Shown piece by piece: positions 626 through 47,985 of a DNA stretch of 64,000 bases. Source of the stretch: Lama guanicoe (taxonomy: Eukaryota). Each line of letters starts with the position of its first letter. The stretch's first letter is position 1. The stretch spans positions 3,165,664-3,229,663 of the forward strand of contig MU057051.1 of the NCBI GenBank assembly GCA_013239625.1. The letters run 5' to 3'. The position numbers and the translations under genes are program-made. The notes beneath the pieces are model-generated. The model was not told the DNA's origin. It saw only the letters and a list, made by a program, of their open reading frames with translations, and did not search any database.

Positions 626-3223
626 CAATCAATCTCAAGTAGGAGCAACCTACGTGAAAAAAAAGAAGTATGATATAATACACTCCATAACAGAGATATA
701 AACTGACTGCTCTGGGAGACGGGACAAGGGAGCCTTAACTCTACCTGGTGAGATGGGCAAAGCTGCAAAGCACTGGGCACCAAGCAGACAAGGGAAGGGA
801 AAGGCAATGCAGACAGAAAAAACAGCACATGCCAAGGTATGGAAGCTCTGCAAGGACTGCTTGCTTCCTGGTAGATTCTGCTTTACATCTAGACCACCCC
901 CACCTGCAGTCCTTGAGGAAGAAGAGTGTCTTTTAAGCTCTCTTCTCTAGCATGACAGGTGGTGCACTGGGGCACTGAAGTGTCCGCTAACGTGAGCAGT
1001 GAGCATCTTCCAGTTTATCAGCGGTACTCCCTTGCGGACGGGCATCCTCAGGCTGCCCACCCCGCCTGCGTGCGTGCCAGTCCACAGCTCTGCTGCACAG
1101 CGCGCACGCTCAGCTGCCACGGCCTTGATATTAAAGCCACTTCTGGAAACCGCAGGTCTCTCTTTAACCCCACTCTGTGGTCAGCCACTGACATCCAACA
1201 ACATTCTTATGGATGCTGAATGGGAGGCCTAGATTAAGAGCGTCAGCTTGCTCCGGACCCTTTTCTGGGGCTTTGAGTGCAGTGGATCCAAGCTGAAGCA
1301 GGTGTGTGCGCATCTTTATTCCCACTGCCACAGGGAGATGCATGCCAGATGCTTCTCCTAGAGTTTGTTTTAATCAAGAGGAATCCTGTAGGAACCACCC
1401 CCCACCCACCCTCCAACCCCCTGACCAGGCCTGTTCTTTGTTCCACAAAGCAAACAGCTAGTTCCGCCTGCCAGGGCAGCCGAGGTGCACACACGCAGGA
1501 GCAAACAAAGAGGCCCTCTTGCCCAAGATTTTCTTTCCTGTTGGCCTGACACGGTTGCCGGTGCCCTTTGTCTGAAGTCACCAGATGTGCCAGGCACCCT
1601 CAGGGAACCGCGGTAGCTGGGTATATCACTCCCTGACCTTCCATTTCCACCGCCGCCCTCACAACACCCAGCCTAGTAGCACAGGGAGGGGCAGGTGGGG
1701 GTAGAGGGGACAGTGGTCTGCTGCTCTGTTCTGAATGCTGACGTGCTGCTCCCAGAGCAAGTGCGTCCAAGTCCCCCACGGAGTGGTCCTGATGCCTGGT
1801 CCCTCACTCCTCCCTCCTCCCTGGCCTGCAAGCATCCATCCGGCATGTCTACACTGTGCCAAGACTGTGCCACCAATGACCTTGCGTCACCCTCACCGCT
1901 GCTCCGAGGCTCTGTCATTATTCCCACTGTGGTGACAGGGAAACCTGGGCTCAGACTGGGTAAGTGCCACACCCTAGATCACACAGCCCGGCTTGAGGAG
2001 GTCTATCCGCCCCCCACCACCCCGAGCAGAGGCCACCGACCTCTTTCTTCAGGTCTTGAGGATTCCTTCACAAAAAGGATTAATTAGGGTGTGAAAGGCT
2101 ATAATCAACCCAAATACCAGGTCAGGCACACTCTCAATCTGGTCAGTAGACAACTCTCTTGATAATTAGAACAATCGTATTGGAAATAGTCACGTTTTGT
2201 TTTGAAAATCCTACCAAAGGTAGTTTGGGTTTTGCTTTTATTTAATGTATTTGCTGTCTCTGTGAGCACATCCAGCTGCACCTTAGAACAACTCATGAAT
2301 GTTTTCCCTGAAAACACACACTTCCCTCCTCTTGTCTTTCACTCATTTATCTTATCTCCACTCCCCAGAGTTCATGAGGCTCCATTCCACAGCCCTTCCT
2401 GGTTATCGGTTTTGTTTTTACAAGCAACATTTATCTGGATTGCTAAGACATTCTTGGCTTTCTAGAAACATGCTTTCATTTTTCTCATCAGCTGGTCACT
2501 TTATACGCTTCCAAAGTTATGCCTCCACATGAAAATAGTGCCCTTAATATCCTTACGCTTCACATGGCATTAACTACAGCTATGATGAAATGGGACACGA
2601 ATAGTTTATTAAAGTCCATCTACACCCGGGAAAATCATGCTAGTCATCATGCAAATCACACTGAACATTCCCCAGGACAATGTGATTCGTTTACCTCTCT
2701 GTGTTTACAAGCAACTCCCCCGAATTATTTATCAATATTTTAATATACAGAACTCAGAAACAGGAGGGTGGCTACACCCTCGTATTTTCCCAGGCAAACT
2801 GACAGTCCCCAGGGCCAATATTTCCCACCATTCTTCCTCTCCTTGGTGGTGTTCCTAGGTCAAAAGGGCAGACTAAGGCTGTGTTTGAAAGTCACCACAG
2901 GTATAAAACCAGAAATTTAGGCTTTACGATGTTTGATTTTAAAGAAGCCACCAAGTCATAGGCATGAGAAATTCTTGACACGGAAGGGAGGCCTTCTACC
3001 AAGAGGGGTCAAAGCATCTTGGAGGCATGAGAACCAGGAGAGGTTTCAGAGTCACTGCATCTTACAATCCACAATGAAGCTGGTAATGAGACCAACACAA
3101 GGAAGGCTTGGCAGTGATTGAGAAAGCAAGAATATTCACAATACAGTGCAAATGAGTTGCTGACAGTTGATTTCTGGGTTGTACAGGCAAGCTATTTCTG
3201 TGATCTTTAAGAAAAACTTCCTG

Positions 3224-3370
3224 GGGGTAGGGTGGAGGGTATAGCTCAGTGGTAGAGTGCATGCTTAGCATGCACGAAGTCCTGGGTTCAAACTCCAGTA
3301 CCTTTGTTAAAAATAAACAAGTGACTTAATAATCCCCCCCAAAAGACGTAGAAATTTAAAAAATTTTAAA
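3224..3370 (+). mobile_element. tRNA-Ala(AGC)-derived SINE (camelid Vic-1 type)
   Basis: A box tagctcagtgg, anticodon arm gcatgcttagcatgc, B box gttcaaact, A-rich tail; perfect 15-bp TSD aagaaaaacttcctg (3209-3223, 3371-3385). Confidence 0.92.
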
Positions 3371-5853
3371 AAGAAAAACTTCCTGTAGAAACTACAGGAA
3401 AGGTCCAGGGTTCCATGACCCACAGGGTATCACCAGGGCACATGAACTGATCCTCTAGCCTACAAAACCCCTTAGAAAAGCATGAGGAAAAATAAGACCT
3501 TGCCTTCAAGGAGTTGCGAGATGATGACAGCCATCTTCACAGCTCTTGTCATACAAGGAATGGGCAATAAAACCCAGAGTAAAGGGCAAAGAGAAAGCTA
3601 TTGCATCCAGAGGAGAGGAGCTACCTTTCAGCTTTATAGGCCGTGTCCTGCAAGAAGCACACGGAGACACTCAGAGGGATGGCAAACCAACCAGCGCCTG
3701 AGCTCATGCCGAGACACTCCAGTTTCCAGGGAACACCCTTGGCCAAAATCTGCTGGATGGGAAACCAGCCGAACGCTCTGCACCCTCACAAGTAGATGGG
3801 GTTCAGGAATGAACAGAGAAAGACATAACCCAGTTGTTCTGGGATGGAAAATATAACACGCACCAGTTTGCAATTAGTCTAAAATGAAGAATCAGGACCA
3901 TTTTAGCCCCAAACAGAAAGAACAGAAAGTTCATGAGGTTGGGTCCTTTCCCAAAATAAAATTCACCCTTCCTAAAGCTTTTTAATTTTCTATTTTTAAT
4001 GGCCTCATCGTACATGAGTAGTTAATTATAAGCCGCTCACAAGGGAAGGGTGTTAGGTGCTTGAAATCCAGGCGCAGAGGAGAAAAAAGGAGCAAGAGAC
4101 AGGGTGGCGGCAGAGGTGGGCTCTTTCACACCCTGGATTTCATTAGAGCTGCAGCAGATAGCTAGAGACGAGAGGAGAAGAAAGAGAATCCTCTGTATTT
4201 CCACCATCAAGAAAGCTTTCTGGCCTCCAATTCGGAACACAGATCCTTCCCAGCCCCTCCTTCTTCACTCACACGCTATCCAGTTACAAAAAAACTGGAG
4301 TGGCTATGCCTTTTACAGTCACTAGAAGAGCCTATAAATGTAACATTTTTAAATAGCAAGAGCACAGACATATAAAAATGATGGTCTTTGGACCCAACAT
4401 TTTCTTGCCTTGCAAAACTTACTTTCTAAGTGATTTTCAGTTGGTATCTCCAGCCAGTGTTCTGGCATATCTCTCTGGGTGATCACTGTTTGTCTTATTC
4501 TTCTGGGTATGACTTCACCCATCACCCATACATGACAAGAGAGAAGCCTGGGTTTTGCTGGTCATCTTAGCTATACTACCTTGACCAGTATCACACATAC
4601 ATTTGGAGCTCAGTAAATATTTGGTATTTGCTGAATACCCCTGAGTGGGGAAAGTTACCAATCAAGTGCCTACTATAACCACAGCAAATGAAAAGAATAG
4701 AATTTAAGAATGTGCCATCTCCCTGAATCCACTAAATGGCACTTGGGAGGATCCGCAAGTCTGACAGCATGCTGACCTGTGCACATGAGTATATGTGTGG
4801 ACCTCAGGGTTATCCAAAAGTCCCACTAAGCCTTGGATCCTGCATTAGTCCCTACATATGAAAGCTAAAGAAACAAGAGAAGTCACTGATCTCTTTTCAG
4901 TTTAACCAAGTTGAGTTTTAAATTGGTGTTTCTCCCTGTGGAGACCATGCTTAACATTCGATCTATCGTTGGATTCTCTGTCTGCTGTGGGTCATACTGA
5001 CTTCATCAGTATGCTTTCTGTGTCTTTTTCACGGGAAACAAGTTAAAAAGATAAAGCCAAGAGATCTGTCACCCGCTGCAGGAAAACTCCTTCCAAATCT
5101 GTCTGTAACCCCAACCTCCTTGCCTAGGAAGGCTGTCAAAAGGAAGAAATCATGATTTAAATGATCCTGAACGAGTTTCTTGCTGACGTCCAGGGATCAT
5201 CTCTTTCTTCAACTCTTACTTGAACTTTTAATATATTCTAAAAGAAGGACAAGAGAATCACTGTGATTAAACTTTATTACCTTAAAATTAGAAACATCAA
5301 CTCATTATTAGAACCATCAATACTCATACACCCATACATGGCCACTCAACCAGTGCCCCTTTCCCACCAATGCAGGAGGACACATGTGCTCCCAGAACTC
5401 TCCATAAAGAAGTAAAATCTGGAAACAAAATGCCCACATACAAGGGGCCCTTCAAGACTCCAGGGCAATGACTTGTTTCTGTCACAGTGACACGTGAACT
5501 TAGGCAAGTACAAATGACAGTGGGCAAGTCTGGGTCTTAGCATCTACGTCCTCCCCGTGCTCACAGAGTCCCGGCAACGCCCAGGCTAGGAAAGAAGCTT
5601 GGGTACCATTTTCAGAATTGCATGTGAAAAGAAGCTTCACTTCCTCTGAGGAAGTTTTTTTTTCCCTTATAGACAGCAAATATTATGGTGTTGATCAAGT
5701 TTCTCTTTTCACTTAGACGGCCAAAAATCTCACGGCCACACTTCTAATTCACCTTCAGGATCTCTGGACTAGATGTCTCGGCGGTCCTTTGTCCCCACCA
5801 TCTCCAGTAGTAACTCTAGTTGAATCTCTGTTTTCCATGATTTTTTATGATTT

Positions 5854-10028: not shown

Positions 10029-12326
10029 TTCAACACCCATTTATGATAAAAACTCTCGCCAAAGTGGGTATAGAGCGAACATATCTCAACATAATAAAAG
10101 CTATATATGACAAAATTACAGCCAGCATAGTTCTCAACGGTGAAAAACTCAAANNNNNNNNNNNNNNNNNNNNNNNNNNNNNNNNNNNNNNNNNNNNNNN
10201 NNNNNNNNNNNNNNNNNNNNNNNNNNNNNNNNNNNNNNNNNNNNNNNNNNNNNNNNNNNNNNNNNNNNNNNNNNNNNNNNNNNNNNNNNNNNNNNNNNCA
10301 TTATATGCTGACGACATGTTACTATATATAGAAAACCCTAAAAGGTCCACAAAAAAGCTACTAGAGCTGATCGAAGAATTCAGCAAGGTAGCAGGTTACA
10401 AAATTAATGTTCAAAAATCAGTTGCCTTTCTTTACACTAACGATAAATCAACAGAAAAAGAAAGTAAAGAAACAATCCCCTTTAAAATAGCACCCAAAGT
10501 AATAAAATATCTGGGAATAAATCTAACCAAGGAGGTGAAAGAATTATACACNNNNNNNNNNNNNNNNNNNNNNNNNNNNNNNNNNNNNNNNNNNNNNNNN
10601 NNNNNNNNNNNNNNNNNNNNNNNNNNNNNNNNNNNNNNNNNNNNNNNNNNNNNNNNNNNNNNNNNNNNNNNNNNNNNNNNNNNNNNNNNNNNNNNNNNNN
10701 NNNNNNNNNNATATTTCACAGAACTAGAACAAATCATAATAAAATAAAATTGGAACCATCAAAGACCTAGAATTGCCAAAGCATTACTGAAGAGAAAGAA
10801 AGAGGCTGGAGGAATAACTCTCCCAGACTTCAGACAATACTATAGAGCTACAGTCATCAAGACAGCATGGTATTGGTACCAAAACAGACATATAGACCAA
10901 TGGAACAGAATAGAGAGCCCAGAAATGAACCCACAAACTTTTGGTCAACTCATCTTCGACAAAGGAGGCAAGAATATACAATGGAATAAAGACAGTCTCT
11001 TCAGCAAATGGTGTTGGGAAAACTGGACAGCAGCATGTAAAACAATGAAGCTAGAACACACCCTTACACCATATACAAAAATCAACTCAAAATGGATTAA
11101 AGACTTAAACATAAGACAAGATACAATAAACCTCCTAGAGGAAAACATAGGCAAAACATTATCTGACATACATTTCAAAAATTTTCTCCTAGAAGAAATA
11201 AAAGCAAGAATAAACAAATGGGACCTAATGAAACTTACAAGCTTCTGCAGAGCAAAGGAAACCAGAAATAAAACAAGAAGAAAACCTACGGAATGGGAGA
11301 AAATTTTTGCAAGTGAAACCGACAAAGGCTTGATCTCCAAAATATATAAGCAGCTCATACGACTCAATAAGAAAAAAATAAACAACCCAATCCAAAAATG
11401 GGCAGAAGNNNNNNNNNNNNNNNNNNNNNNNNNNNNNNNNNNNNNNNNNNNNNNNNNNNNNNNNNNNNNNNNNNNNNNNNNNNNNNNNNNNNNNNNNNNN
11501 NNNNNNNNNNNNNNNNNNNNNNNNNNNNNNNNNNNNNNNNNNNNNNNNNNNNNNNNNNNNNNNNNNNNNNNNNNNNNNNNNNNNNNNNNNNNNNNNNNNN
11601 NNNNNNNNNNNNNNNNNNNNNNNNNNNNNNNNNNNNNNNNNNNNNNNNNNNNNNNNNNNNNNNNNNNNNNNNNNNNNNNNNNNNNCTTACCATATGACCC
11701 AGGAATCCCACTCCTGGGCTTGTATCCAGAAGGAAATCTACTTCAGGANNNNNNNNNNNNNNNNNNNNNNNNNNNNNNNNNNNNNNNNNNNNNNNNNNNN
11801 NNNNNNNNNNNNNNNNNNNNNNNNNNNNNNNNNNNNNNNNNNNNNNNNNNNNNNNNNNNNNNNNNNNNNNNNNNNNNNNNNNNNNNNNNNNNNNNNNNNN
11901 NNNNNNNNNNNNNNNNNNNNNNNNNNNNNNNNNNNNNCATTCTAAGTGAAGTAAGCCAGAAAGAGAAAGAAAAATACCATATGAGATCGCTCATATGTGG
12001 AATCTAAAAAACAAAAACAAACAAACAAACAAAAACAAAGCATAAATACAGGACAGAAATAGACTCATGGACAGAGAATACAGACTTGTGGTTACCAGGG
12101 GGGTAGAGGGTGGGAAGGGATAGACTGGGATTTCAAAATTGTAGAATAGATAAACAAGATTACACTGTATAGCACAGGGAAATATACACAAAATGTTATG
12201 ATAAATCACAGAGAAAAAAATGTGACAATGAGTGTGTATATGTCCATGAATGACTGAAAAATTGTGCTGAACACTGGAATTTGACACAACACTGTAAAAT
12301 GATTATGAATCAATAAAAAAAAAAAA
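10029..12326 (+). mobile_element. Young 5'-truncated L1 (ORF2 RT to C-terminus, 3' UTR, poly-A)
   Basis: ORF2 peptide QHPFMIKTL...YADDM (YADD at 10304-10315)...KYLGINLT...LPYDPGIPLLG in one frame, with a single visible stop at 10745-10747; AATAAA and A-tail at about 12312-12326. Confidence 0.97.
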
Positions 12327-23706: not shown

Positions 23707-25827
23707 TGCTTATTGACAGAGTCTAAAAACCATGTTAACCATCCATTCCCAACAGTTAGGAGCTGATGCTGACTACTGATCGTCAAATCTTGAGTTATTT
23801 AAGCCTCGACTTCTGGTCATTCCTCATTACGGGGAGGAATGGGAAGGGGCTGTGCTCCCACCCCTGAATGGGCTGAAAGCCTGTGTCAGACGCGGGGCAG
23901 ACAGCATGGCCCACAGCCCAGGCTGCTCTGCTGCTCTTCCCGAGGCCAGGACAAGGCGCCCCACTCCTCCTCCAACCCAATTCAGTTTCCACACTTTCTC
24001 TTCACGCTGCATGTGAAATCGTTGTGACTTTCTAGGTCATCCAAGTGCCACGGGTGACCTGGAAGCCCTGCTTCCTCCTCCCCTCTCCCTGGAGCTGCAG
24101 GAAAACACCCTCCTGCTTAAGGAAACTCACGACGCCTCAAGGAACCGTCACTAAAACTTGTCCAAGGTCGGCCTCCCTGTGTGAGGCACCTTCCTCCTGC
24201 CTGTGACGCTCCCCACAGAACAGCAGAAGCTCAACCTACCCCCCTGCCATCAGGAGACCCCAAGGGGAGCCCCCTGGATGCTGTCACCCCACCCGGGAAA
24301 GGCAGAGGCCCTCCTCGCAAGTATCTCCCTTTATGAGGTCCTACCCCCTGGGAATCTTAACCACAACTGGAATCGAACTGATTTTTTAAATAAATGACAT
24401 CTATTTTCAACTCGTTCCCCAGGTCAACATTCTTTGTCTTGCACTTCGACTAAACTTTCTGGCCATTCTAAATGTTAACTCTGAGTTTGCTAAAAGAAGG
24501 AGGGGACAAAGACAGCAGGTTCAAGATGTGCTGATGTTCAGAAACTCAAGAGAGGTCCTGGGAAAAGGAAGTATCTTTTTCTAATTCTTGAGTATCTGGT
24601 ACATAAAAGACACTCAGGGTGTGGAGCTACAGAACACATGGGCTCTCTCTCTCCTGAATGTTGCCCCCTGAAGCAGTAAGCCTCTCCTGACCTCCTACCC
24701 CATGTATGTCTCAACCACAGCACCTGTATCTCCATCATCATTTTAACTGCTCATTTGTCCCCATAAGAAGAAAGAGTTTGCCTGCCTCATATCCTTAGTG
24801 GCCGGTATTGGTTTAAAAAAACAACAAAATTCCAATATTTGATGGAAAATGAATGGCTGTGTCCAGAACTCTTACTCTGTCTTCTATACCCACAGCAAGT
24901 GACTTTTCACAGCTCAGTTAGAACACCAGGGCTGAGGTGCCGGGATGTCCGGTTTACTGTTGACCAAGGCCCATAAGAGGCTTATCAGGACCCAGGCACC
25001 TGGGATCAGAGTCCCATCAGGGAGCGGGCATGCCCGGGGCCTTGACAGAAAGTTCAAAACGAACATCACATCGTAGGTAAACACCAGACCTCTTCTTTAT
25101 CTATGTTTTAATCAATACAGAACATAGAAGAGTGATGTAATTATTAAGAGTCATGGGGGGGCGTGGACTAGAGAGAAAAAAAATGAAAAGAAGACCTTTT
25201 TTTTAACCTTGAATCTTTCCCATTTCACTTTTGCTGATAGAAAGGTCTGGAAGTTCATTGTAGGCACACTTGAATTAGCAGAAAAGAGACATTTTCCTTT
25301 ACTTGGGCACCTGATTGCAAACTCGCTGCTTCTCCTGCTCTCAAGAGCTGCCCTTCAGAGTAAGTTGATTATTTGAAATCAAAGAGCTGAGGAAATAAGG
25401 TTTTTCTTTTGTTTTGTTTTAAACAGTTTCCCTTGCTAACCTGGCTTGCCTGGAGAAGACAGAAATGAGATTTTACACCGAATTAGCTTTGTCTTAAGGG
25501 AGGCAATTCCATTGATCCTGAGATTAGCACTGGTTTTACCATCTGACCCTCTGTTGACCTTACACTTTGAAAGAAATTGCTCACAGACTGGCAGGAAAGA
25601 GGGAAGGAAAAATCTAGGCATGCTATGGGAAAGGAGCACAGAAGCACATATTCATTTTTATAAGATTGAGTGACATTTCCAAATTATTGGGTGAAACACA
25701 AACATAAGGCCATAATTTAAGGGCAGTTTTGGAGGGGAAGAAAGTTTCAATATTACTGAACTTGAACACTATTTCTCTAAAGGTTATAGAATATAAAATG
25801 CAGGTGTAAAGTTAGAAAGACTTTACA

Positions 25828-25956
25828 GGCAGGAGGGTACAGCTCAGTGGAAGAGTGGGAGCTTAGCACGCAGGGGGTCCTGGTTCAGTCCCCAGCTCCT
25901 CCATTAACACATACATAAATAAACAAACACCCCACCAAAACTTTCTTTTAAAAAAA
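25828..25956 (+). mobile_element. tRNA-Ala-derived SINE, diverged copy
   Basis: ggagggtacagctcagtgg...cttagcacgca...ggttcagtccccag, A-rich tail, degenerate TSD agaaagactttaca / agaacgaacttaca. Confidence 0.85.
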
Positions 25957-26851
25957 AGAACGAACTTACACTACAAAGTAGGAACATATAAATGTAAGGG
26001 GACCCAATATATAAGTATGTAAGACCAAAACAGGCTGCTTTTTAGAAGTTTCTCAAATCTATCATTAATAAAGCAAGTACAGTGCTCTTCCCCTGCTCTT
26101 CTGTTACTGGGCTGGCTGCTTCTCTTCACGTCCCTGCATCTGGGTCCTCCTCCTCCTATCTGAAGTCTGTCTCCTTCTCTCTGTCCAACCTGTCACAGTC
26201 CCCCAGCAGGTTCTCCCCCATCCTCATGGACCCCTCACCGTCCCCACCCGACAACAGGGCCACGCTGCCTCTCACTCACCGCCTCCCTCCATGGGCCCTG
26301 CCGGAACCTTCCCCTTCCCAGCAAGGCCTCCTTCCAGGCACCTGGGAGCACCACCCGGCTTTGTGTATCCTTCCTCCCTCGCCCTGATCATCACACATCT
26401 CTCCCGGCATCCAGCCTCTCCTCAGCCCCTACCTGTCCGCTCATTTCTCCTCACCATTCTTCCAACTTCTCACTTCTCTCGCCTCCCGGTCACACCACTA
26501 CAGAATCAGGTCCCCATCAGGTCCCTCATAAAAACTCAGAGTGCTCCCTCACCAAGCAAAAACCACTTATCTGCCATGGCATCAGAGTATTCACAATCTG
26601 ACTCTACCTCACCTTTTCTATCCTAAATCTTTTTATGTTGTTCTTTAAAAAAACAACAGCTTTAAAAAAAAGAAAAAAAGAAACCACTTATTATAAAAAA
26701 TTTTCAAACATTAGCAAAAGTAGACAGAATAGTACAAGTAGGTCTTACTTGTCCATCACCCAGCTCTGACACTTCTCATCACATGGCTAATCTCATTTCA
26801 GCCATACCCTCACTCACTGTCTCCCCTCAGCAAATTTTAAAGTAAATTCCA

Positions 26852-27137
26852 TACAACAGGAACAGACTTACAAATATAAATAACAAACTAATGGTTACCA
26901 GAAGTGACAGAGAAAGGGGGAGGAGCAAGAGGGGATTAAGAGGTACACACTACTATGTATAAAGTAAGTCACAAGGATACGTTGTACAGCACAGGGAATA
27001 GAGCCAGGATTTTACAGTAACTTTAAATGGAATATAATCTATAAAAATATTGAATCACTACGCTGTACACCTGAAACTAATACGATAATGTAAATCAATT
27101 ATACTCCAATAAAAAATAAAACAAAAACAAACAAAAA
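26852..27137 (+). mobile_element. L1 3' end inserted into an older opposite-strand L1 fragment (about 26680-27450)
   Basis: Typical L1 3' UTR, A-rich tail, perfect 13-bp TSD aaagtaaattcca (26839-26851, 27138-27150). Confidence 0.9.
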
Positions 27138-30100
27138 AAAGTAAATTCCAGATAGCCTATCATTTCACCTGTAATTTCACTTCAGTAAGTTTCTTTAAAA
27201 GATAAATACTCCTAAAAACAGTAACACTATTATCACCCCTTAAAATTTTGTTCATATTATTTATTAATATCATTAAATACAGAGCCAGCATTTAAATAAC
27301 CCCGATGATTTTACTGTTTTTCCCCAATATTGTCCCCAATTTTTTTTTTTGTCTTTTACAGTTGGTTTGTTTGAACCGGGATTCCAAACGTGGTTCCTGC
27401 TTTTGATCAGGGTCCCTGACTCTTACAGTCTCTTTTAATCTGTAACCACTTTAACATCTACTGCTCCACAAGGCTCCAGCCCAGACACACATCTTGCTTT
27501 CCCACCTAACAAGGTGTTGTTTATGCAGTACTCAGTATCCCCAGTGTACCAAATACCACCCACCTTTCACAGCCCCACCTCAACACTGCCCCCTTCATGA
27601 AATCTTTTCTGGTGGCCACCAGCCCCTCGCCATCTCCTACAGCACTTCATCTCTACTTCATTTGGGGCATTTACTTTATCCTTCTCTGCAAACAGTCTGA
27701 GTATTAGGTGTCTTCCTTCCAGTCTTCTGCAAGGTAGATTTATCTGATTTATCTTCATAACCCTTGAAGAACTTAGCACAGTACCCTGCACTTGGCAATT
27801 GTTCAGTAAGTAAATCTGTAAATGCTGTACATAAAAATAATATAAATGGAGAAGTGAAGGACAGTAAGAGTATCTTACCCCACTTCATCCTCCTCTTCCC
27901 CTCCACCCACTCATTCAAGAGCTATCTGTTGCTAACTGCTACATGCTGACACCCTGAAAGTGCCTAATGACCCAGAAGTCCTATTACCCAACACAAAAAC
28001 AAAAGTGGCTCTCTTAACATCCTCAAAATACCTGCAGCTTTTGGACTCAATTTCAGTCCTTCCAAGATCAATAATAACATTATATCTTTCTCAACAAGCA
28101 AGATTCGTGCATTTTCACCAAAAACAATTTTAATTTATCAACGAGACCCTGAAACATTCTAATGGGACTGTCAAGACTCAAAGGCATCTCCCCTTTGTCT
28201 ACTCATTCCTCTACCACACATGTTTACCGAACACCTATTAAGCGCCAAGCACACTGGAGATGCTGAGTGGAAAATGATGACTCACAGTCCTTGGCATGAC
28301 AGGGAAGATAAAACCAAGAACAAAATTTCCAGCAATACCAGGTCCATGGAAACTGTAAGGTCCAGGAAGCAACCAGGGAAGTTCTTGGAGGAGCTGGAAT
28401 TCGAGCTGAGCCGATGCTGAGAAATCTGAAAACACTGAACACTATCTACATCTCTCTTTTGCACAAAAGTGGGAGACGGGAAAGGGTAGGGATGATAGCT
28501 GTGGACAGTCTTCATTTTACTTCCAGATGACAGTCGCTCACATCCCTGTTGACTATCCATTTCTCCACATGCATTCCAGCCACTGCCACAAACCCAAGGA
28601 GAAAGAGGACATTTCCTTTTCAAAACTGCAGAGCATGTATTAAAAGGATGTAACATCGGGGGAAATTATGCTACGAAATAATGAGTAAAAGTCCCCAACA
28701 GTCCTCTAGAAGAATGTGTGACAGGCAGACAGTGAGGAGCCGTGTCTCTGTGGGGAGGGAACTGAAGCAGCTCCCCAAACGCAGACCACCACTGTCATGC
28801 GTTCACTCTGCTGCACAGGGACCGCCCCCCGACCCCATCACAGGGCTCATCAGTTCTCCTCTGTGGAGCAATCAATCTGGTCTTAAAAAGCTGAGGCAGT
28901 CTGGGTCTACAAAAATCATTTTTACAGAGTATCCGTTTGGAATACTTATAAAATATTCTTAAAATAATCTGATACTTTTCACCAAATGTTCTAGTAACTT
29001 AAAACTTTTAGGGCTTAAGCTCAGGCCAGGATGAAATACTTCTTATCTGACGGTGATAAAACAGCACTTTAGGGATTTCTGGCCTGGGGCAGTGGCAAAA
29101 ATTAGAAAAACTGATGCCAGGAGGTTGAGTCGCCTCCTAAGGCTTACCGAGGAAATAAACTTTTGAATATAATGTAGTTCCTTGAAGAAATGTCAGCTTT
29201 TAGTCACAATGCTGGGTGAGTCCTTCCACTGGGGCAGGAAAAGGTTAAAGGCCAGTGAACAAATTAAGAAAAACTGTTTACTAAATTAAAAAATTATACT
29301 TAATTCACTCTCCTCCAAGTAGTTAACATAATACTCCTAAAATTCTACTATATAATACCCACATAAATACATAATGCACCAGAAAGGCAGCATCTGTCCA
29401 CTACAGTGACAAAATTTTTTCCCATTAAATATGATTCTGTCACATTTGTTCAGCAAACACCTTCAGAAGCAATAGCTAACAAGGTGTAAAAACACAATCA
29501 TGATCCTGTTTAAGAAACTGCAAGGAAACACGAAAGCAAGGCAGAGAAATTCACAGAGTAATAGCAGAGCTTCCTAAAAGACCTCCCACATCATCACTGG
29601 AGAAAATCCAACAGGAACCACACAGCAGGGACTGAAAACCCAGTTCAGAGAGGAACTGGTTCTCTCTTTACTTTCATCAGACACTGCACAGATGTGACTT
29701 TGCATCAGACCTTGTTCTAGGGACAGGGACAAAGGGACAAAGGTCACATGCTGTTCACCTGCAGATGGTTTGTGCCTGGTCTTTGTGATTCTTTAATTTG
29801 AAGCAATGCTTAAAAGTCAGGAGATCTCAAAATACAGCAGCTTAAGTCTTTACAGATTATCTCAATTTCATGTAACAAAGACTCTCTCTTGCCTACCATG
29901 GTTCCCTTTCCTGCTTTTAACATGAGACAGCAGAGGACCTAAAGCTTCCTATAAAATATCCTGCATCCCATGTATGTCCTAACTTTAATTTTCCTCACAG
30001 TCAAATCACTATAAACACGCCAAACACCATTCTCAACTACCCTTCAATGAATAAGCCATGTTAACTCAAGCTTTGACGTAAGGTCTGAAGGTGATAAAGA

Positions 30101-30144
30101 CATGATGGGTCCAAAGGAGAATCACTTTACTCAGTACCCTGTAG

Positions 30145-30326
30145 GCATGTCCCCCATGAGGCAACGGCACATCAAGGGCAATAGCAGGGACGCCAAGCTG
30201 TTGCACAGAAGGGAAATTAGATGGAAAAAACAGACATGTCCCTGCAAAGCAATGAAAATTACACCCATTTCACTTTTCTCCCTAAAACTAAACCAAATCT
30301 CAAAAAGGCTAAGATAGGCAAATCAA
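30145..30326 (+). repeat. Inverted-repeat arm A (intron 8), partner of 31661-31842
   Basis: Manual gapless alignment with the reverse complement of 31661-31842: 131/182 identical. Confidence 0.93.
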
Positions 30327-31263
30327 CAAGAGGCTTTTTTTTATAAAACTGTCTCAGTTATAATAACCTCAAAGAGACTATTTCCCAGACATTTTATTGT
30401 TGTAACAAACAAACCCATCTTTCACTTCTTGTCATGTGCAATTACCATGCCATAATTGAAAAACAGTGAATCACCGCGGAGCATGCAGGAGAGAGGGCCT
30501 GCCGGCTCTGAGCTGTCACTGTAATCATCACAGAATAAACAAACAATATCGAAAGTTCTTTCTTCATCATCTTTAACCTATATATTGCAGAGACTCTAAG
30601 AAATTTATACTCTGTAATTCCCCTCTTTCCCTAAAGATGGCATGGTATTTCAAACATTTTTCCCTTCAAAACACTGCTTTTCTCTTCTTCAACAGCCCAA
30701 GCCCCACACCAAAGGATTCAACATAATTTAGAATCTATTTGTAGGAGCCAAGAATTCAATTAAGAGAAAAATTATCTTGCAAGGGTTTGGGCAATTCAGC
30801 CCATTAACCCTCTTGTAATTTTGCTGAGAAAAGCATCTGAATTATCTAACAAAAGGCTTCACAAGTTAGAACGAACAAGCAGAGGCCAGGGTGAAGGATT
30901 CCAGAAATCTGGGTCCTGTCTACCATCCAGCCCCATTAGCAAAGTCACACAAAGCTCTAGGCCTCTGACCTTTAGGAATCCTGGAGGGGCTCACTCCTGG
31001 GCCTCTAAGACTCACCGCGTGCAAGAGCTTTTAACCAGTGTCCTTAACAACCTTTAAGTTTATTGACTTAAAATGGTCAACAGCAGAACTGCTGAGCTTA
31101 CCCTTTGTGAACAAGGTCTGGATCAATGACCTGGTGAAACTGAGTTTCACTCTGTCATGAAGAGGAAGGTAAACAACTGGCCCTGGTGTGGAAGAGGTGG
31201 TCCTGCCCATCCCCTGCACCCAAGCCAGATGCTCCCGCCCCTCCCCCACCCCTCCCGACTCAC

Positions 31264-31476
31264 CTTGGTGGCCTCCTCCACGCTCTCCCTCAGGGCCTGC
31301 AGCTCCGCGTCGTACTGTTCCTTCAGCTTGTCCATCTCCTGGTCGTGGCTGGACACCTCCTCTTTCAGGGCTCCCTTCAGGGCAGTGAGTTCACGCTCTC
31401 GCTTTCTCAAGAGGTCTTCCTGCTCCTCTTTGGTGATGAGCAGATCTTGAAGGTCCTGCTTTGCCTGTAAGAGCTC
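31264..31476 (-). CDS. CGNL1: CGNL1 exon 8 (213 nt, [71 protein letters not shown])
   Basis: Acceptor ttccttctctag|gag, donor AAG|GTGAGT; phase 0-0; contains the [16 protein letters not shown] motif shared with cingulin. No further CGNL1 exon recognised in 1-31263 (long intron 8). Confidence 0.97.
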
Positions 31477-31660
31477 CTAGAGAAGGAACACAGCGGAGGT
31501 GAAGATGCAACAGATGTCTCGTGGCCCTGCACCTCGACCTCGGCCACCCGCAGGGACGGCCACTCCCTCGCCTGTCCCCCAACAACCACTGTCCTCGCAC
31601 AGACACCGGCTGAGACCCTTGTAGCCTCTCCCCTTTTCCTCCTCAGAGGCCATATTCCCC

Positions 31661-31842
31661 TTGATTTGACTACCTCAGCTTTTCCAACAGTTGATTTAAT
31701 TTGAGGGAGAAAAGGGAAACTGATCTCACTTTCAGTGCTCTGAGGGGCCAGGTCTGTTTTTCCCACCCCACTTCACGTCGGTGCAATGCTCTGTCACCTC
31801 TGCTGGTGGCCTTTATGAGCCGCTGCTTCACGGGGGACTTGC
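31661..31842 (-). repeat. Inverted-repeat arm B (intron 7), partner of 30145-30326
   Basis: Same alignment; shared blocks include gtccccc, ttgcac, aaaaacagac, cttttctccct, caaatcaa. Confidence 0.93.
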
Positions 31843-32439
31843 TGGTCTTGCTTACTTCACCCCAAACCCTGCGTGTGGTCAAACCCCGAACCCAAGACCC
31901 TAGTCTTCAGGGGAGACTCTGCCCCACCGTGAGCAGGGACAACCATCACACATTCTCCTCCCTCACTGCCTCGTGAACCTCACTGTTGATAAGCGAAGTC
32001 ACAACATGGGGGGGGGGGGGCAAGTCCCACCACAAATCGCATCACCTAAACCCAAGTGTGTCTGCCAAGGCCGGGCACTCCTTTCATGTCATCATCTCCA
32101 TGCCAGACCCGCTTAGCTCCCCTCAAGCTTGGGCTCACCCTCTCCCGCAGACGCCCCTACCTCCCACTCAGCAGGGACTCAGCCTGACACCTGGCTCCCC
32201 TCTGCACTCCAGGCTTCCCCCCACCCAAAGCCCCTGGACAATGAGCTGTCTGTTCCCCGCCAGCCTGCTCCAGGTCTTTACTACATTAGTTATCTTTTCT
32301 TTCTGTCATTTTGTTCTATTTCCTTGAATCTCTGTCATTTCCCTCACGGCACAAGAATCCTCTGAGTCAAGGACAAAAAAACAAACAAAAAAACAAAACC
32401 AAAACAAAACCAAAAAAAAAAAAAAAACAAGCTTTACCA

Positions 32440-34970: not shown

Positions 34971-37887
34971 GCCTCCGCAGGCCTGACAGCAGGACTACAT
35001 ACTCAGAGGGGGCAAGGAGCAAGCAGCTTCCCTGTGCTCAGTCTTTCGGATGCAAATGAACAGAGCTCTATGTTGGTTGGGAGGGCCTGTGAGAGGGGTC
35101 CACATGTTTAAACTAAAGCAAAGAAACCTGCCCAGAACCTGGCAACACAAGAAGGAAAGTGGAGAGGAAAAGGAAGTAGGCTCTGGGTCGCAGCTGTCAC
35201 TGGCAGCAGCAGCAAGTGATTGCCCAAAGCAGGGGCACTGAGAGACACCAGAGTGCCTAGAGTAGCAGGTTACCTGCCCACAGAACAGTTTACCTCACAC
35301 CCCACCTACTCACAGGTGCCCCTGGCAAAAAGAGACCAAAATACTCACTGAGACCTTAATGCTTCCAAGAAGTTCTATTGGGTCTCTGTCTCTGGCCCAT
35401 GCTCATTGAAAGGGCAGGTAAAAGGTTTTATACCAAAACTGTAGCTGACAGAATTTTATGTCATTTTCCCCCCAGAAGGATAGTCTAGAAAGTGTGACAC
35501 AGATGGTGAGAAACATGATTTTCTCAGTTGCTCTTTTATGAAATGTGTGTAACATTCAGTAACATCACTACAAAATAAGCTTCCTACTATTTTAGAGACC
35601 TCATTTCTGAGCACAGTCTATCCCCAGACCAGTAGGGTTTCATAACCAGAGTATTTTACTCATCTCTCAGTACCTATGTCTTGGTAAATGTCAGGGATAA
35701 AGCACCACAAGATACTGCTGGCCCACCCGTCAGCACTACAGGCTCCCAGAGATGTCTGGTAACTAGAAAATCCCACTGTCACAGGACTTACGGCAATGTT
35801 TCATGTTTATCCGTCACCCACAGAATGGAGGGAAACATATTCACGGGAGAGAAGTGGCTGAAAACTTGAGCTACAACTATTTTCTGTATCTTGATTTAAA
35901 AAAGGAAATTCAGAACCATCAATTGTTTAATCAAGAATAACAAAGTCATCCTATTCTTGGTCAATTATTTGGCTTATCCTAAGAAAACAGGGTACTTTCT
36001 ACCATTTCTTCCTTCCTTCCTTCCTTTTTTTTTTTTTTTAATGATTTTATTCTCTCTTAATGTCACTTTACTGACTCCATATTGGGGCCCAAAATGACTT
36101 AACAGAATGTGAACTATTAAAAGGTATTTTATGAAAAATCCTCTGCGTTATGCAGGCCTCACAAAATATAGGGCCTTCAAGCTTTTTCAAACACTCAAAG
36201 GCAGAAGAAGTGTTTAAAGCTCACTGAATGTACTTGAGAGTCTGTTCTCAGCCAAGTGCCATGGAAAACTTGGCCACGACTACAGTCTGTTATCAGATTC
36301 CCCCAGGCCACTTTCTGTTAAGATATGAAGAATAAACTGACAGTGATGAGGGGATGGGGTCTATTTCACTAGTGATACAGAAACCATTGATCATTTTTTA
36401 AATGTTGCTGACACGTCAAAGGAAACTGATAAATAGAGTGAGGACAATTTTCCAGAGGGAAAGAAACCCACTTTGGCACAGAGACGCTAACTCTGTCCTA
36501 ACTTATCTTGCAGAAAGGCAGCAGGAGATGATACAGCTCCCAGGACAGGAAACAGGCAAATCACCAGGAAAAAAACCACACGTGGAACATTTTTAAGAAA
36601 AGATGTGCTCTCTTTCCCTTTTCTTTCTCTCATTATCAGCCTTTGCCTGAAAACACACCCCCAAACTTAAGCTCATATCCTATTCACCACTATAAACAAG
36701 CCAACAGGCTATTAATTTAATTAATATATGCTCAGTACACTGTGTTTAAAGAGGCAAAGAAGCTACAGTTCATTTCAGAATTACTCCCTTTTTTTTTTAA
36801 TGGTGACATTTTAAAATAATTTAAATACTGAAATGTATTCATTCATTTGCTCTACTGCTTGGCACCGTGCTAGGCATGAAATGTGGGAAGAAGCAAAGAT
36901 GATGTGATCTTGAATGAGCAGGCTAGGAGAAGAAAGAGACAGATATCAAAACAGAGCAAGGTCAAGTGCACTAAAATAGAGAACCTAAATGGATAAGAAA
37001 ATATCTGGTAAAGGACAACTAACAATTTAGGTTTTAGTTACTGGGAAAATACAAAAACTTTAGAGGCTTCCCAACAGCTAAGGTAATACCTTTCTCTTTT
37101 AGAATCAGTGAATAGTCCACACAAGGAATCACAGACTATGGCAAAGTCTTACCTTCTATTTAAATGTGTTTATGAAGCTACATTTTTATCGAAAGCCATA
37201 CCTGCTCAGTGACATCATTTCTACCCTTAGGGAATTTTTCTAAAGAAGTAAAAGGATACATATAAAAAATATTCACCATCTTTTTTCATAATTAAAAAAA
37301 AAACTTAAATACAGGAGGATGATTAAGTATATTGTAGATTATCTCCTTAAAAATGAAGTATGAAGACTATAAAGTATAATAAGGAAAAAGTTTCTGACAT
37401 ACTAACTTTTAAAAACTGGTATCAAAACTGCAGAGACACTATAGTTGCACCTACATTATAGATGAAACCTATCAACAAATAGGGAAGGAAATAGAAAATG
37501 CAGAAATAAAAACAGCTATTAAGGTGTTAGGAAAATATGTGTGTTTCCACCACTACCCTCCATTTTAAAATTTCATTTTATGTGAGTTTCATAACACTTC
37601 AGTGATAAATAGACTTATTTTCAAAGCTCTGTCCTAATGTACCATGTCTTTGTAATCCTGAGCCTGGAGAAAAACACGGAGCCAAGAAGAGCAAAAAAAA
37701 AAAAAAAAAAAATGCAGTGTTTTTAAAGAATCATTGGGTAAAACGAGAAATACCAGGTGGGAAGAAGCAGACCTGAGGCTTTCTCAGGAGAAAGAGGTCT
37801 AAACAGAGACAAAGAGATGGTCATGTGGGAGGGAGAGAAAATGACCCCCTCTGCCCATGTGAAAATGAATCCATGAGAAGACCACTG

Positions 37888-38036
37888 AGGGGTGGGGGGA
37901 GGGTACAGCTCAGTGGTAGAGAGCATGCTTAGCATGCATGAGGTCCCAGGTTCAATCCCTAGTACCTCCGTTAAAAAAATTAATAATAAATAAACAAACC
38001 TAGTTACCTCCCTCCCTGCAAATTAAAAAAAAAAAA
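37888..38036 (+). mobile_element. tRNA-Ala-derived SINE (Vic-1 type)
   Basis: A and B boxes, poly-A tail, 13-bp TSD gagaagacc(a/t)ctg (37875-37887, 38037-38049). Confidence 0.92.
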
Positions 38037-39074
38037 GAGAAGACCTCTGCCACGGGGCCACAAACACTCCGCTCTCCTCCCCGCCCTGCCAAGTCCTGGG
38101 GAAGAGAGAGGCTAAAGACCGGGAACAAAAATCCTTCCTGAGGACTCACTTCAAAACTAAACAAGGAAGAGGGTGAGAAAACCGCTGACGGCTGAGACAC
38201 AGGGAGCTCCAGGGACTTACCAGACGGCAGCTTTTAACCCCAAGAAAGGGACAAAGACAAGACCCAAGCCCTTGGAGGAAAAGCAGCTGGAAGTGAGAGT
38301 TACATACTAACAAGTCACCTTTATTTCTCATAAGCGCTCGGTTTGTTTGTTTGGCTTTGCTCTACATTGTGTATCTTTTATTTGTTGGGCTGTTCCTACA
38401 AACCAAAGCTTACAAGGAACTAAATTTCAAAATTATGCCCAAAATACAGGTAATGATGTTACTGCAAATATCAAAACATCTAAATGGGTGCAGTTCTGTC
38501 CATTTCTGATTCTCAATGAGACTCATTCCCAAAAAAGAATGTAGACGTTCAATACCTATTCTTGCTCTCCAGTCATGTCACATGTATGTATCTAACACCT
38601 CAACAGGACGGTAACTTAATTCAGAGGAGAGATAACTGCCTCTGAAAAAACCCATAATAATGAACAAAGGAATGCAGAAGAAGGAGTCAACTTTATCCAC
38701 TGAATCACAGATTGATAATAAATACTCAATAGGGGATAGACTGATAGTGGGTAGAACCCAGATGGGCAGCCTATGTATACTGCAGGTAGATTCACTCACT
38801 CACTCACTCACTCATACTGCATCATACAGCCATCAAATATTTCCTGAGGGCTATATGTCCCAGGCACTGGAATAGCTGCCAAGGATATGGTGCTGAGTCA
38901 ACCATTACCAACCCTACCCTCCTGGAACTTACTGTCTTATGGGATCTTCAAACAAAGAAAAACATAATCTGTGAAAAGTGCTGTAGGAGCATTCACATAA
39001 TATTAATGACTTTAAAATGTTTTTCCATAAATAGCATTACTTACAAAGTATTTTTGCTCAAAGTTTAAGCTGAT

Positions 39075-39740: not shown

Positions 39741-40162
39741 AGTGTGGTATATATATATATACGACAGAAAACTACTCAGCCATTAAAAAGAATAAAATAA
39801 TACCACTTACTGCAACATGGATGGACCTAGAAACTGCTGTACTAAGTGAAGTAACCCAGAAAGAGAAAGAAAAATACCATATGATGGCACTTACATGTGG
39901 AATCTTGAAAAATGACAGAGGTGAACTTATTTACAAAACAGAAACAGACTCACAGAAAGAAAACAAACTTATGGTTACCAGTGGGGAAAAGGGGGGTAGG
40001 GTGGAGAGATAAAGTGGGAGTTTGGGATTTGCAGATATTAACTACTATACATATAAAAGGTAAAAAATAAGGTCCTACTGTATAGCACAGGGAACTATAT
40101 TCACTACCTTGTAATAGCCTACAATGAAAATGAGTATGACAAGGGATGTGTGTGTGTTTGTG

Positions 40163-40209
<47 letters not shown>

Positions 40210-43872: not shown

Positions 43873-44274
43873 GGTAAGTATCAGTATTTGTTGAAGACTC
43901 ATCTTTTGTGTGAAGTCATACCCAAAGCCCATGTCTGTGTTCCCAAGGCCCTTTGTACATATATCTGTTAAAGAATTTTCACAGCATTGGGGATTATTAC
44001 CCTGCTAACTACCAGTGAGATTTTTACACCTCACTTTCTGCATATACCTATATGCTACACGCAAGTAGTAAATACATGTATGTTGGCTAAACTGACTGTC
44101 TTCTTTTAGGTGTTACATTTCCATAATGGGGAGAGGAGCCTGATTGAATATTAATAGGATCTCACTTTTCCCCCCATGGATTTAACAACAGGATGACACT
44201 CTCAAAAGGGTTACTACAAATAGGGGAGGGGTAAAGATAGAAGCAGGAATCAAAACTAGAAAAAGCAGTGTCTT

Positions 44275-44565
44275 AACCACAAATAGACTCACAGACACAG
44301 AAAACAAACTGTGGTTACCAGTGGGGAAGGGGAGGAAGGGATAGATTAGGAGTTTGGGATTAACAGATACATATTACTATACATAAAATAGATAAATAAC
44401 AAGGACCTACTATATAGCACAGGGAACTATGTTCAATTTCTTATAATAAGTTGTAATGGAAAAGAATCTGAAAATATATGTATGTATGTATATGTATAAT
44501 TGAATTGCTTTGCTGTACACCTGAAATTAACATTGTAAATCAACTATACTTCAATAAAAAAATAA
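44275..44565 (+). mobile_element. L1 3' end (older subfamily)
   Basis: agactcacagacacagaaaacaaac...gcacagggaactat...tgtacacctgaaa...tcaataaaaaa. Confidence 0.88.
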
Positions 44566-44582
44566 GATAAGAGAAAAGGGAA

Positions 44583-44730
44583 GGGGAGGATATAGCTCAA
44601 GTGGTAGAGTGCATGCTTAGCATGCATGAAGTCCTGGGTTCAATCCCCAGCATCTCCATTAAAAATAAATAAACAAACAAACAATCCAAACCTCCTCCTT
44701 CAGCCAAAAAAAATTATTAAAAAAAAAAAA
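44583..44730 (+). mobile_element. tRNA-Ala-derived SINE nested between two L1 3' fragments
   Basis: ggggaggatatagctcaagtggtagagtgcatgcttagcatgc...gttcaatccccag, A-rich tail. Confidence 0.9.
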
Positions 44731-45756
44731 GAAAACCATAAGAAAAAAAAAAAAACAACCTAAAGAATGGGAGAAAACTTTTAAAAATGAAACTGACAAA
44801 GGCTTGATATACAGAATATATAAGCACCTCATACGACTTAATAAAAAAAAAAATCAACCCAATCCAAAAATGGGCAAAAGACCTAAACAAGCAATTCTCC
44901 AAGGAAGAAATACAAATGATCAATAGGCACATGAAAAAATGCTCAGTATCACTAATTATCAGAGAAATGTAAATCAAAACTACAATGAGGTATCACCTCA
45001 CACTAGTCAGAATGGCCATCATNNNNNNNNNNNNNNNNNNNNNNNNNNNNNNNNNNNNNNNNNNNNNNNNNNNNNNNNNNNNNNNNNNNNNNNNNNNNNN
45101 NNNNNNNNNNNNNNNNNNNNNNNNNNNNNNNNNNNNNNNNNNNNNNNNNNNNNNNNGCTTACCATATGACCTAGGAATCCTGCTCCTGGGCATATATCCA
45201 GAAAGAACCCTACTCAGAATNNNNNNNNNNNNNNNNNNNNNNNNNNNNNNNNNNNNNNNNNNNNNNNNNNNNNNNNNNNNNNNNNNNNNNNNNNNNNNNN
45301 NNNNNNNNNNNNNNNNNNNNNNNNNNNNNNNNNNNNNNNNNNNNNNNNNNNNNNNNNNATTTGCAGCAACATGGATGTTCCTGGGGAATGTCATTCTAAG
45401 AGAAGCAAGCCAGAAAGAGAAAGAAAAATACACTATGAGATCGCTCATATGTGGTATCTAAAAAAAAAAAAATACAAAACAGAAACAGACTCATAGACAT
45501 AGAATACAAACTTGTGGTTGCCAAGGGGGAGGGGGTGGGAAGGGACAGGCTGGGATTTCAAAATGTAGACTAGATAAACAAGATTATACTGTATAGCACA
45601 GGGAAATATATACAAGATCTTGTGGTAGCTCACAGCGAAAAAAATGTGACAATGAATATATGTATGTTCATGTATAACTGAAAAATTGTGCTCTACACTA
45701 GAATTTGACACAACATTGTAAAATGACTATAACTCAATAAAAATGTTAAAAAAAAA
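44731..45756 (+). mobile_element. Young 5'-truncated L1, same family as 10029-12326
   Basis: [12 protein letters not shown]...LPYDLGILLLGIYP...MRSLICGI; 3' UTR closely similar to 12000-12310. Confidence 0.95.
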
Positions 45757-47985
45757 GAAACACAAATAAAACACTACTCAATGGGAAAAAAAAACACGGG
45801 GTGTGGGAAAGAAAGTAAAGGAAAACAAAGTTTCTATGGGTTTATGTAGGCTGGAATAAAATGCAGCTAATGTGAAAAAAAAGGCAGTGTCCTGGCTCTC
45901 ATGCACTTGAATCCAAGTGTGAGTCATGCATGAACTTAGAATGAGGTACTTCCTCATCTACTCCTATGAAATAGACCAGAAATCAACAGTCAACAAAAAT
46001 AGGACTTCCAATAGTCTTAGGCAAAATGAGAACAACCCACTTTAGAAATATAAATCTAACCCAATGAGGAAAGTTGTACATTGTTCTTTCCCAAACAAAA
46101 ACTGCCTGCTTCGCTGCATTCCTATATGCTTTTAGCCCAGAATGAAGGGTCTTCTTGCAGGAAATCACTTAACTGACGCCAAAATGTAAAATTCCAAAAC
46201 CTTTGCCAGCAAATAATCAGATTCACAAAATGAGAGAAAAGAGGAGTGGGCAATTAAGCAGTCACGGCACTGTGATCAGAGCCAGAAGTCTAAGAGCTTA
46301 AGTCCATCTTTCTATTATCTCTCTTTTGATTAAGAAGCAATAGCTTCTTAATTGGTCTCCCCTCCTCTAATCATACCTCTCTCCAAAAGCTGCAAAGGAA
46401 TGAATTTTTATGAATACGACACTATTCATTGCTGTTGAAAGCCCATCAGTGGTAGCCCATCACCTTCAGCCTGAAATAGAAACTGACGGGATATACAAGG
46501 TGCTTCCTATCTGGTCCCCACATCCTGGCTCTCTTCCAGCCACACTAAATTACCTCCAGTCCCCTAGACGTGGCAAACACACCTCTTTATAGTTCATATT
46601 TGTTTGTGCTGTTCCCTCTACCTAGAATGTCCTGCCTTCCCTTCTCTGGGAGAACCCTATCATCTTTTGAGACATCATGAGTGTTATCAACTCCAGAAAG
46701 GCTATCCTGACTTCCCTAGTTTGGACTGGATACCCCTAGTCTGGGACCACAGTGACAATCTTAACATCAAGACTGAAGGATGCATTCTCCAAGAGAATAT
46801 GCAGGCAAATGAAAAGCAGGAACCATGGTGATCATTTGGATTTAGCCAAAAAAAAAAAAAACCTCTAACCTAATTTTAAAAACTGTGTAGAGCTCCTGAA
46901 GCTTGCCTATAATTACACAAGGTGTATAATTTAAAGACTTCTCAGTGGGAATTGTGTGTATATGTTTAGATTAATACATAAAATATTTATATATATATTT
47001 TACTTATAAAAATAAATACAAAATATTTAAAATATACCTATATATAACTATATATTTTAATGTTATACATATGGATAAATAAATGGTTTTATCTGATGCC
47101 AGAGCAGCATCATGGGTCAGCTGAGCACAAGAGGAATACTGAACAGTAGAGAAAAAAGGGTAGCTGATGCCTAAAAATACCCTTTATTCAGATACCTCCA
47201 AAGTTAAAAAAGAAGCTATAGACAAATTCCCTGTTATCTGCATCTGGGATCTCCTTCCTTCCAGGGCAGAACTTTTCCCAGAAGGGGAAAGGGAAGATGC
47301 TTAAGCAAGAAACGGATCCCAATTCAAGCTGGTACAGGACTGAGGAACAAGACTTTAGTCGTTCCCCTTCAATAATGCTTCCTTTCAGGGAACCAAGGAT
47401 GTCTAGCAAATAGGAGATGACTCCTTCTTTAACAAAGAAAATCTCCAAGTCTCAACTCAAATTCAGCATAAAACATTAAGCAGGCAGTTTTTTTTTTAAA
47501 AAAAAAGAACTTGGCACCACTCCACTCCTTCCTTTCCGTTCTGCCCATGCTGGTCGGCTCCACCAGCCTCTCTTTGTATGCTCCTCTCTGACTCTAATTT
47601 CTTACTCTGTGAAGTTTGAGAGCTTGGGTCCAAGCCCGTTCACACTTACCTTCCAAACCTGCCTATGATTATGCTCGGGTTCCCCACCGTTGCTTCACTT
47701 CACTCCTCCTATTCTTTTGCCTTTCTAAATTTCACCACCTACTTGTCTCATCCCATTCTATTTTAGAGATTTTTTTAAAAATAAAACTCATTAAAACCTT
47801 TCTGGAAAAAAAGGCAGGGTGCAAATTAGTAATATGTAAAACGTGCTTTTCCATCATCGGTTCTGCTCACTACTCAGGGAACTTCCCCCTTAACTGCTGT
47901 GGCCAAACATACAGACTGAAGAAAGCAATCTGTTTGCCACGTTTCGTGTGAAATGCCTGCTACAAAACACAAAGCTGTGACTCAC

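Follow-up and report, generated by a model that had tools for sequence, protein, structure and literature searches.

CGNL1 exon 8 is enclosed by an inverted repeat that is confirmed here as real, with one 182-nt arm in intron 7 and the other in intron 8. The pair is best explained, and we think probably so, as an old inverted duplication that has undergone neutral drift in base composition, the pairing between its arms being incidental. One event, most likely a local inverted duplication of ~182 bp, would have placed the two copies in introns 7 and 8 before the divergence of the mammalian lineages sampled. Each arm would then have drifted toward the base composition of its own neighbourhood, arm 2 becoming GC-richer while arm 1 stayed A-rich, and in an A-rich unit such drift would have produced mostly A-to-G differences, which read as G-U pairs on the CGNL1 sense RNA. 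If the arms paired, exon 8 would be looped out, and its skipping or back-splicing could be favoured as a by-product.

The inverted repeat and its surroundings

The arms, the exon between them and the flank that serves as a neutral control are listed below, with positions counted in the window, that is, the whole 64,000-nucleotide stretch of Lama guanicoe DNA that was analysed.

31661-31842, minus strand: arm 2, located in intron 7 as the 5′ member of the pair in the pre-mRNA; 184 nt lie between its end and the exon 8 acceptor; GC 0.505, in GC-rich surroundings
31264-31476, minus strand: CGNL1 exon 8, a phase 0-0 exon of 213 nt whose 71 codons encode coiled-coil rod; within the 1334-nt loop if the arms pair
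30145-30326, minus strand: arm 1, located in intron 8 as the 3′ member of the pair in the pre-mRNA; 937 nt lie between the exon 8 donor and its start; GC 0.434, in AT-rich surroundings
30084-30146, strand not given: unduplicated flank outside arm 1, the neutral control, better conserved in mammals than arm 1

A repeat search of the window recovers the arms as a 182-nt pair that is 72% complementary with a spacing of 1334 nt, and our own count of arm 1 against the reverse complement of arm 2 gives 131/182 identities, 28 transitions, 23 transversions and no gaps. The gapless 182-bp inverted repeat described in the original prediction is thus reproduced by both routes, and the spacings that it gave between arms and splice sites, 184 nt and 937 nt, agree with the coordinates of exon 8. 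Searched against the 64-kb window with blastn, either arm gives a match at E 2e-29 and no third copy is found. Gapped blastn detects no extension of the homology into the 500-nt flanks.

When the window is compared with itself (blastn), the exon 8 arms are the sole inverted pair at E<1e-3, and the direct pairs number ~20. Since all other detectable repeat pairs are direct, the arms provide the only inverted complementarity in 64 kb. The other repeats fall into two groups.

3221-3377, 25827-25946, 37885-38041 and 44578-44735, plus strand: four copies of a tRNA-Ala-derived SINE, three of them called tRNA-Ala (agc) by ARAGORN
11938-12326, 26838-27140, 39807-40165, 44256-44577 and 45361-45760, plus strand, antisense to CGNL1: five L1 3′-end fragments, from the self-blastn

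The SINE presumably resembles the tRNA-Ala SINE of camelids, a likeness that would suit the five closely related organisms whose DNA runs contain this region. ARAGORN places tRNA-like heads only in three of its copies, and none at the arms. We also note that runs of N at 11409-11685, 11749-11937, 45023-45156 and 45221-45358 lie in or beside the L1-like repeats, and that the repeat alignments end at them.

Exon 8 is bounded by an acceptor AG at 31477-31478 and a donor GTGAGT at 31258-31263, and 368 exon ORFs are related to it, many of which carry Pfam PF01576. Exons 7, 6, 5 and 2 of CGNL1 lie upstream at ~40.4, 42.0, 42.5 and 50.5-52.1 kb, respectively; the position of exon 7 implies an intron 7 of ~9 kb, and the 31 kb downstream of exon 8 show no exon 9. 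Exon 8 begins and ends on whole codons, and its skipping would therefore stay in frame, in agreement with the earlier description of a phase 0-0 exon whose loss removes 71 aa. DNA sequencing runs of five organisms contain 0.89-0.95 of the words of this region. The fraction present in the RNA contigs of three runs is 0.29-0.42, which indicates that intronic RNA is present. A step in GC content also crosses exon 8, from 0.55-0.65 on the exon and intron 7 side (31200-32350) to 0.33-0.41 in intron 8, ~1 kb downstream (29650-30830).

Copy number, age and origin of the repeat unit

Protein collections, and no TE library, were used to judge how often the unit occurs, so that the figures that follow are a proxy for copy number and not a genome-wide count. 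A profile of both arm translations searched against 1.84 billion representatives gives seven matches, comprising six short ORFs and one spurious tandem-repeat protein, and an alignment of the arm ORFs word-searched against 5.8 billion proteins gives seven proteins only, each on 1-2 contigs. Seven ORFs (P0155-P0159, P0161 and P0163) contain arm 1 plus its own unduplicated flank, 30084-30146. P0153, P0160 and P0011 contain arm 2 plus its own inner flank and exon 8; P0011 continues into the exon, and P0153 and P0160 cross it in another frame. P0152, P0154 and P0162 span no flank and are placed as arm 1 via signature residues. No ORF with a foreign flank occurs among the arm matches in the 1.84 and 5.8 billion proteins. 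The ORFs that extend beyond an arm carry the arm's own flank and are therefore orthologues from other mammals rather than dispersed members of a family. Contigs of equal length (2578 and 3430 bp) point to two or more taxa in which the ORFs of arm 1 and arm 2 lie on one contig.

The top match, P0151, was treated as spurious. This 1220-aa protein of ~24 tandem units fits a 31-residue basic stretch of the arm 24 times and reaches E 2e-38 by summed repeats; it has the look of a translated satellite, probably with no relation to the arms.

Arm 1 of the window agrees with arm 1 of another species at 36/49 codons and with arm 2 of the window at 28/49. This closer match to the other-species arm 1 than to its own arm 2 indicates that the duplication predates the split and that the arms have not been homogenised. 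Further, several lineages give a called ORF at this one locus and none gives a foreign flank, so that a family of at least 100 copies should have left many more matches. This comparative evidence is at the amino-acid level and comes only from ORFs whose frame happened to stay open; on that basis we conclude that the arm pair is old and low-copy, and a local inverted duplication would be its simplest origin, with an old repeat of very low copy number as a less likely one. The original prediction had stated that the arms resemble no recognised SINE, L1, L2 or MER, and this is supported by the absence of a further copy in the window and by protein collections that give only orthologue-like ORFs. 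It had also named two outcomes that would count against it, a high-copy transposable element and absence from other mammals; what we find is low copy number and both arms present in other mammals.

A rather unlikely origin, in our assessment, is that two copies of an old interspersed repeat family were inserted independently in opposite orientations, their pairing being incidental as it is for inverted Alu or MIR pairs. The homology stops abruptly on either side, in the manner of full-length short elements or 3′-terminal LINE fragments, but the arm ends show neither a target-site duplication nor a terminal inverted repeat, poly-A tail or tRNA head; such marks may have eroded at such an age. 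The divergence of 28% between the copies (~15-18% each from their ancestor) is typical of early placental families, the unit has one A-rich strand and one open frame, and the other repeats of the window are themselves LINE ends and SINEs. Such a family should be represented elsewhere, yet a third copy is absent from the 64 kb, and the 1.84 and 5.8 billion proteins hold only orthologous-looking ORFs, none with a foreign flank and each on 1-2 contigs. Nor is there a Pfam or Rfam match: Rfam searches of 29600-30480 and 31480-32400 return noise only, with E up to 10, and Pfam finds nothing on the arm frame. The unit may resemble the 3′ end of L2, a likeness that is given no weight here.

In age, divergence and inverted orientation within one transcription unit, the arms are similar to inverted intronic copies of MIR, L2 and MER elements. 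Inverted pairs of old transposons form incidental dsRNA and are potential ADAR substrates. The arms differ from these pairs in that neither the window nor billions of predicted ORFs yield an additional copy, and in lacking transposon hallmarks.

Pattern scans of genome and viral contig collections, which contain hardly any mammalian DNA, give 0 copies. A metagenome scan with exon 8 finds only three distant loci (54-71% exon identity), and the arms are not found there; a 61% blastn match to an arm in the distant exon 8 loci was not confirmed by nhmmer (E 0.88) and was set aside.

Each arm contains an open frame.

30147-30314, plus strand, antisense to CGNL1: 56-codon ATG-to-stop frame through arm 1; no Pfam family
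31673-31840, minus strand: homologous open frame of arm 2, with its stop at the same place as in the arm 1 frame

These frames raise the question of a coding origin, in which the unit would go back to a short protein-coding sequence, and part of the gapless divergence would have built up while coding constraint still acted, ahead of the decay of the copies. The frame takes up nearly all of the unit, both arms keep it open to a common stop place, and an ATG stands at the start of arm 1. The amino-acid identity of the two frames is 34/60 against 29 +/- 2.5 in simulations (P 0.04), but this value holds for one of six frames. Differences between the arms at the three codon positions number 16, 14 and 21, a slight excess at the third, but the codon differences comprise 12 synonymous and 26 non-synonymous changes. 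Several orthologues keep the frame open, but P0154, P0156, P0157 and P0159 have lost it through shifts or early stops, and ORFs enter the database only where they are open. A T-poor unit also stays open easily, the frame being kept in 0.185 of simulations, and there is no protein family or homologue beyond the orthologous ORFs; a word search with the arm 2 ORF gives no candidate. We therefore regard a coding origin as very improbable, and the open frame is most likely a matter of chance in an A-rich, T-poor unit.

Base composition, indels and constraint in the arms

The transitions between the arms are distributed unevenly between strands. Those that give G-U pairs on the sense versus the antisense RNA stand at 20:8 over all 182 bp, at 15:2 in the inner 126 bp, where 108/126 positions are pairable on the sense RNA, and at 5:6 in the outer 56 bp. 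Our recount of the inner and outer parts is identical to the figures first reported. This wobble bias is caused by a difference in base composition between the arms. GC content is 0.33-0.41 in the flanks of arm 1 and 0.55-0.65 in those of arm 2, and positions with a weak base (A/T) in arm 1 and a strong base (G/C) in arm 2 outnumber the reverse by 29:16. Transversions cannot create wobbles. Taken alone, they nonetheless run in the same direction, with 11 weak-to-strong changes to 6 of the reverse, and 8 A>C to 3 C>A. In the outer 56 bp, GC is 0.607 in both arms and the bias is absent. The strand on which arm 2 is sense is the A-rich one of the unit, so that a gain of GC in arm 2 or of A in arm 1 reads mainly as A-versus-G, and thus as G-U on the sense RNA.

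The original prediction had attached two caveats to the bias. The first, a base-composition difference between the arms, is borne out, since the flanks mirror the GC of the arms and the transversions follow. The second, a transcription-associated asymmetry, is not visible in rates polarised on the repeats of the window: on the SINE and L1 copies, plus-strand T>C is 0.040 and A>G is 0.042 per site, both from small counts, and transcription-coupled asymmetry was rejected as the cause.

Once composition is matched, 17.0/28 wobbles are expected on the sense RNA and 20 are observed (P 0.17). In the inner 126 bp, 15 are observed against 11.1/17 expected, a residual excess with P 0.036 uncorrected for the chosen split; a scan for the best split under the composition-matched null gives P 0.04. 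The inner part also has A>G at 0.20 per A site versus T>C at 0.04 per T site (P 0.09). Changes that preserve pairing make up 20/51, compared with 14.6-17.8 expected (P 0.07-0.31). The ts:tv ratio is 1.22 in the arms versus 1.34 in the repeats of the window, which indicates that pair-breaking transversions have not been depleted.

These counts bear directly on the possibility that the arms are selected as a long-range pre-mRNA stem that would tune in-frame skipping, back-splicing or ADAR editing of exon 8, which we consider improbable. The inner 15:2 bias is in its favour, and the excess that survives composition matching counts against plain drift, but the bias is paralleled by the transversions and by the composition of the flanks, and transversions that would break the stem are not depleted relative to the other repeats. 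The original prediction had taken the wobble bias to suggest selection on a helix; flank GC and transversions going in the same direction, together with 17.0/28 wobbles expected against 20 seen, argue otherwise.

The one unusual feature of the arm pair is the presence of zero indels over 51 substitutions. Repeat pairs of the window have 0.12 gap openings per mismatch, which gives 6.2 expected for 51 mismatches, with P(0)=0.002 and P(<=2)=0.054. This signal is weakened because the comparison repeats have indel-prone A-rich tails, and because the arm pair was noticed for being gapless. A gapless pair at 28% divergence would suit a selected stem and had originally been put forward as a sign of one. 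Other lineages, however, carry frameshifting indels in one arm or the other, within arm 1 near 30227-30242 in P0157 and P0159, and near the inner end of arm 2 in P0153, P0160 and P0011. Indels are thus tolerated in the arms of these lineages, and the gapless state is not common to all.

Conservation among mammals points the same way. Both arms are kept in several mammals, as a selected stem would be, but the arm is less conserved than its flank: across the seven orthologous ORFs, identity ranges from 12/14 to 15/21 in the flank outside arm 1 versus 20/39 to 42/56 in the arm. Where both arms can be compared, in a single species pair, 16 codons differ in one arm only and 1 differs in both, that is, 16 uncompensated changes against 1 compensated by this codon-level proxy. 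The double change is at codon 14, with Arg/Arg here versus Lys/Lys there, and about one parallel codon change is expected by chance. The protein-level constraint and the codon comparisons are indicative only. Overall, the changes in the arms look like neutral drift, with no solid signature of helix selection. The initial inference of selection on an RNA helix is accordingly not sustained, as composition explains the bias, the flank outconserves the arm and the codon-level changes in one species pair are almost all uncompensated.

As a separate observation, the 63 nt at 30084-30146 show 67-87% identity in the seven translated ORFs and may be a small conserved intronic element.

Predicted pairing and its splicing context

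Pairing of the arms in the pre-mRNA is thermodynamically plausible. RNAduplex predicts -195.1 kcal/mol for the sense arms versus -155.6 for the antisense arms, a difference of 40 kcal/mol, and the self-folds of an arm are at ~-44 kcal/mol. On the sense RNA 151/182 positions are pairable (83% with wobbles) in helices of up to 17 pairs, compared with 139 positions and helices of up to 11 pairs on the antisense RNA. In the predicted MFE structure of the 1.8-kb sense segment, folded with 30505-30543 blanked, the arms form 150 arm-to-arm pairs, 139 of them in register. The earlier proposal that the arms could fold into a long stem on the sense RNA, with a duplex check on both strands, is thus upheld by these models, and the greater predicted stability of the sense duplex and its retention in the MFE are also points in favour of a selected stem.

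Reverse complementary matches in introns promote back-splicing and skipping (bioRxiv 10.1101/2021.02.28.433292), and looped-out exons tend to be skipped (PMC8052449), both of which lend some support to a stem acting on exon 8. At the same time, conserved pre-mRNA pairings tend to avoid looping out exons (PMC8052449). In human, circCGNL1 consists of exons 5-8, with the 213-nt exon 8 as the back-splice donor exon (PMC10829403), so that the exon 8 donor is one known to back-splice there, a point in favour of the stem. This exon 5-8 circle is the only documented CGNL1 circle, and it requires pairing between intron 4 and intron 8, a different intron pair from that of the exon 8 arms. An exon 8 stem would compete with the intron 4-intron 8 pairing and would not explain the human circle, which counts against selection for the stem.

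The arms share several features with intronic reverse complementary matches, which are inverted Alu pairs in primates and non-repetitive sequences in other animals. These include complementarity in both flanking introns and a predicted exon loop, and the arms' length of 182 nt and pairability of 83% with wobbles fall in the range of working pairs. Unlike inverted Alu pairs, the CGNL1 arms are not a multi-copy repeat in the collections searched. The arms also resemble the PCCRs (PMC8052449): both are intronic, non-repeat by the tests used and at an orthologous position in several mammals, and they lie 1.3 kb apart in one gene. PCCRs are, however, defined by conserved, nearly perfect short complementarity, the best ones having compensatory substitutions and conservation above their flanks, whereas the CGNL1 arm is less conserved than its flank and, by the codon-level proxy, changes mostly without compensation. 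The text supplements of PMC8052449 do not contain CGNL1. By these likenesses, the arms would belong with the non-repetitive intronic complementary matches as a candidate.

If the stem worked, it would provide a clean, transposon-free and mammal-conserved case for how intronic pairing chooses between skipping and back-splicing, in a gene that already has a studied circular RNA using the exon 8 donor. It seems hardly probable, however, that a non-transposon stem ~100 million years old would set the balance among the linear mRNA, a form lacking 71 rod residues and circles made via the exon 8 donor. On present evidence, the value of the drifted duplication is methodological, for it illustrates that a strand-specific G-U excess can arise when an A-rich unit is copied into neighbourhoods of different GC content. 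Two checks expose such a composition artefact, namely the direction of the transversions and the GC difference between the flanks.
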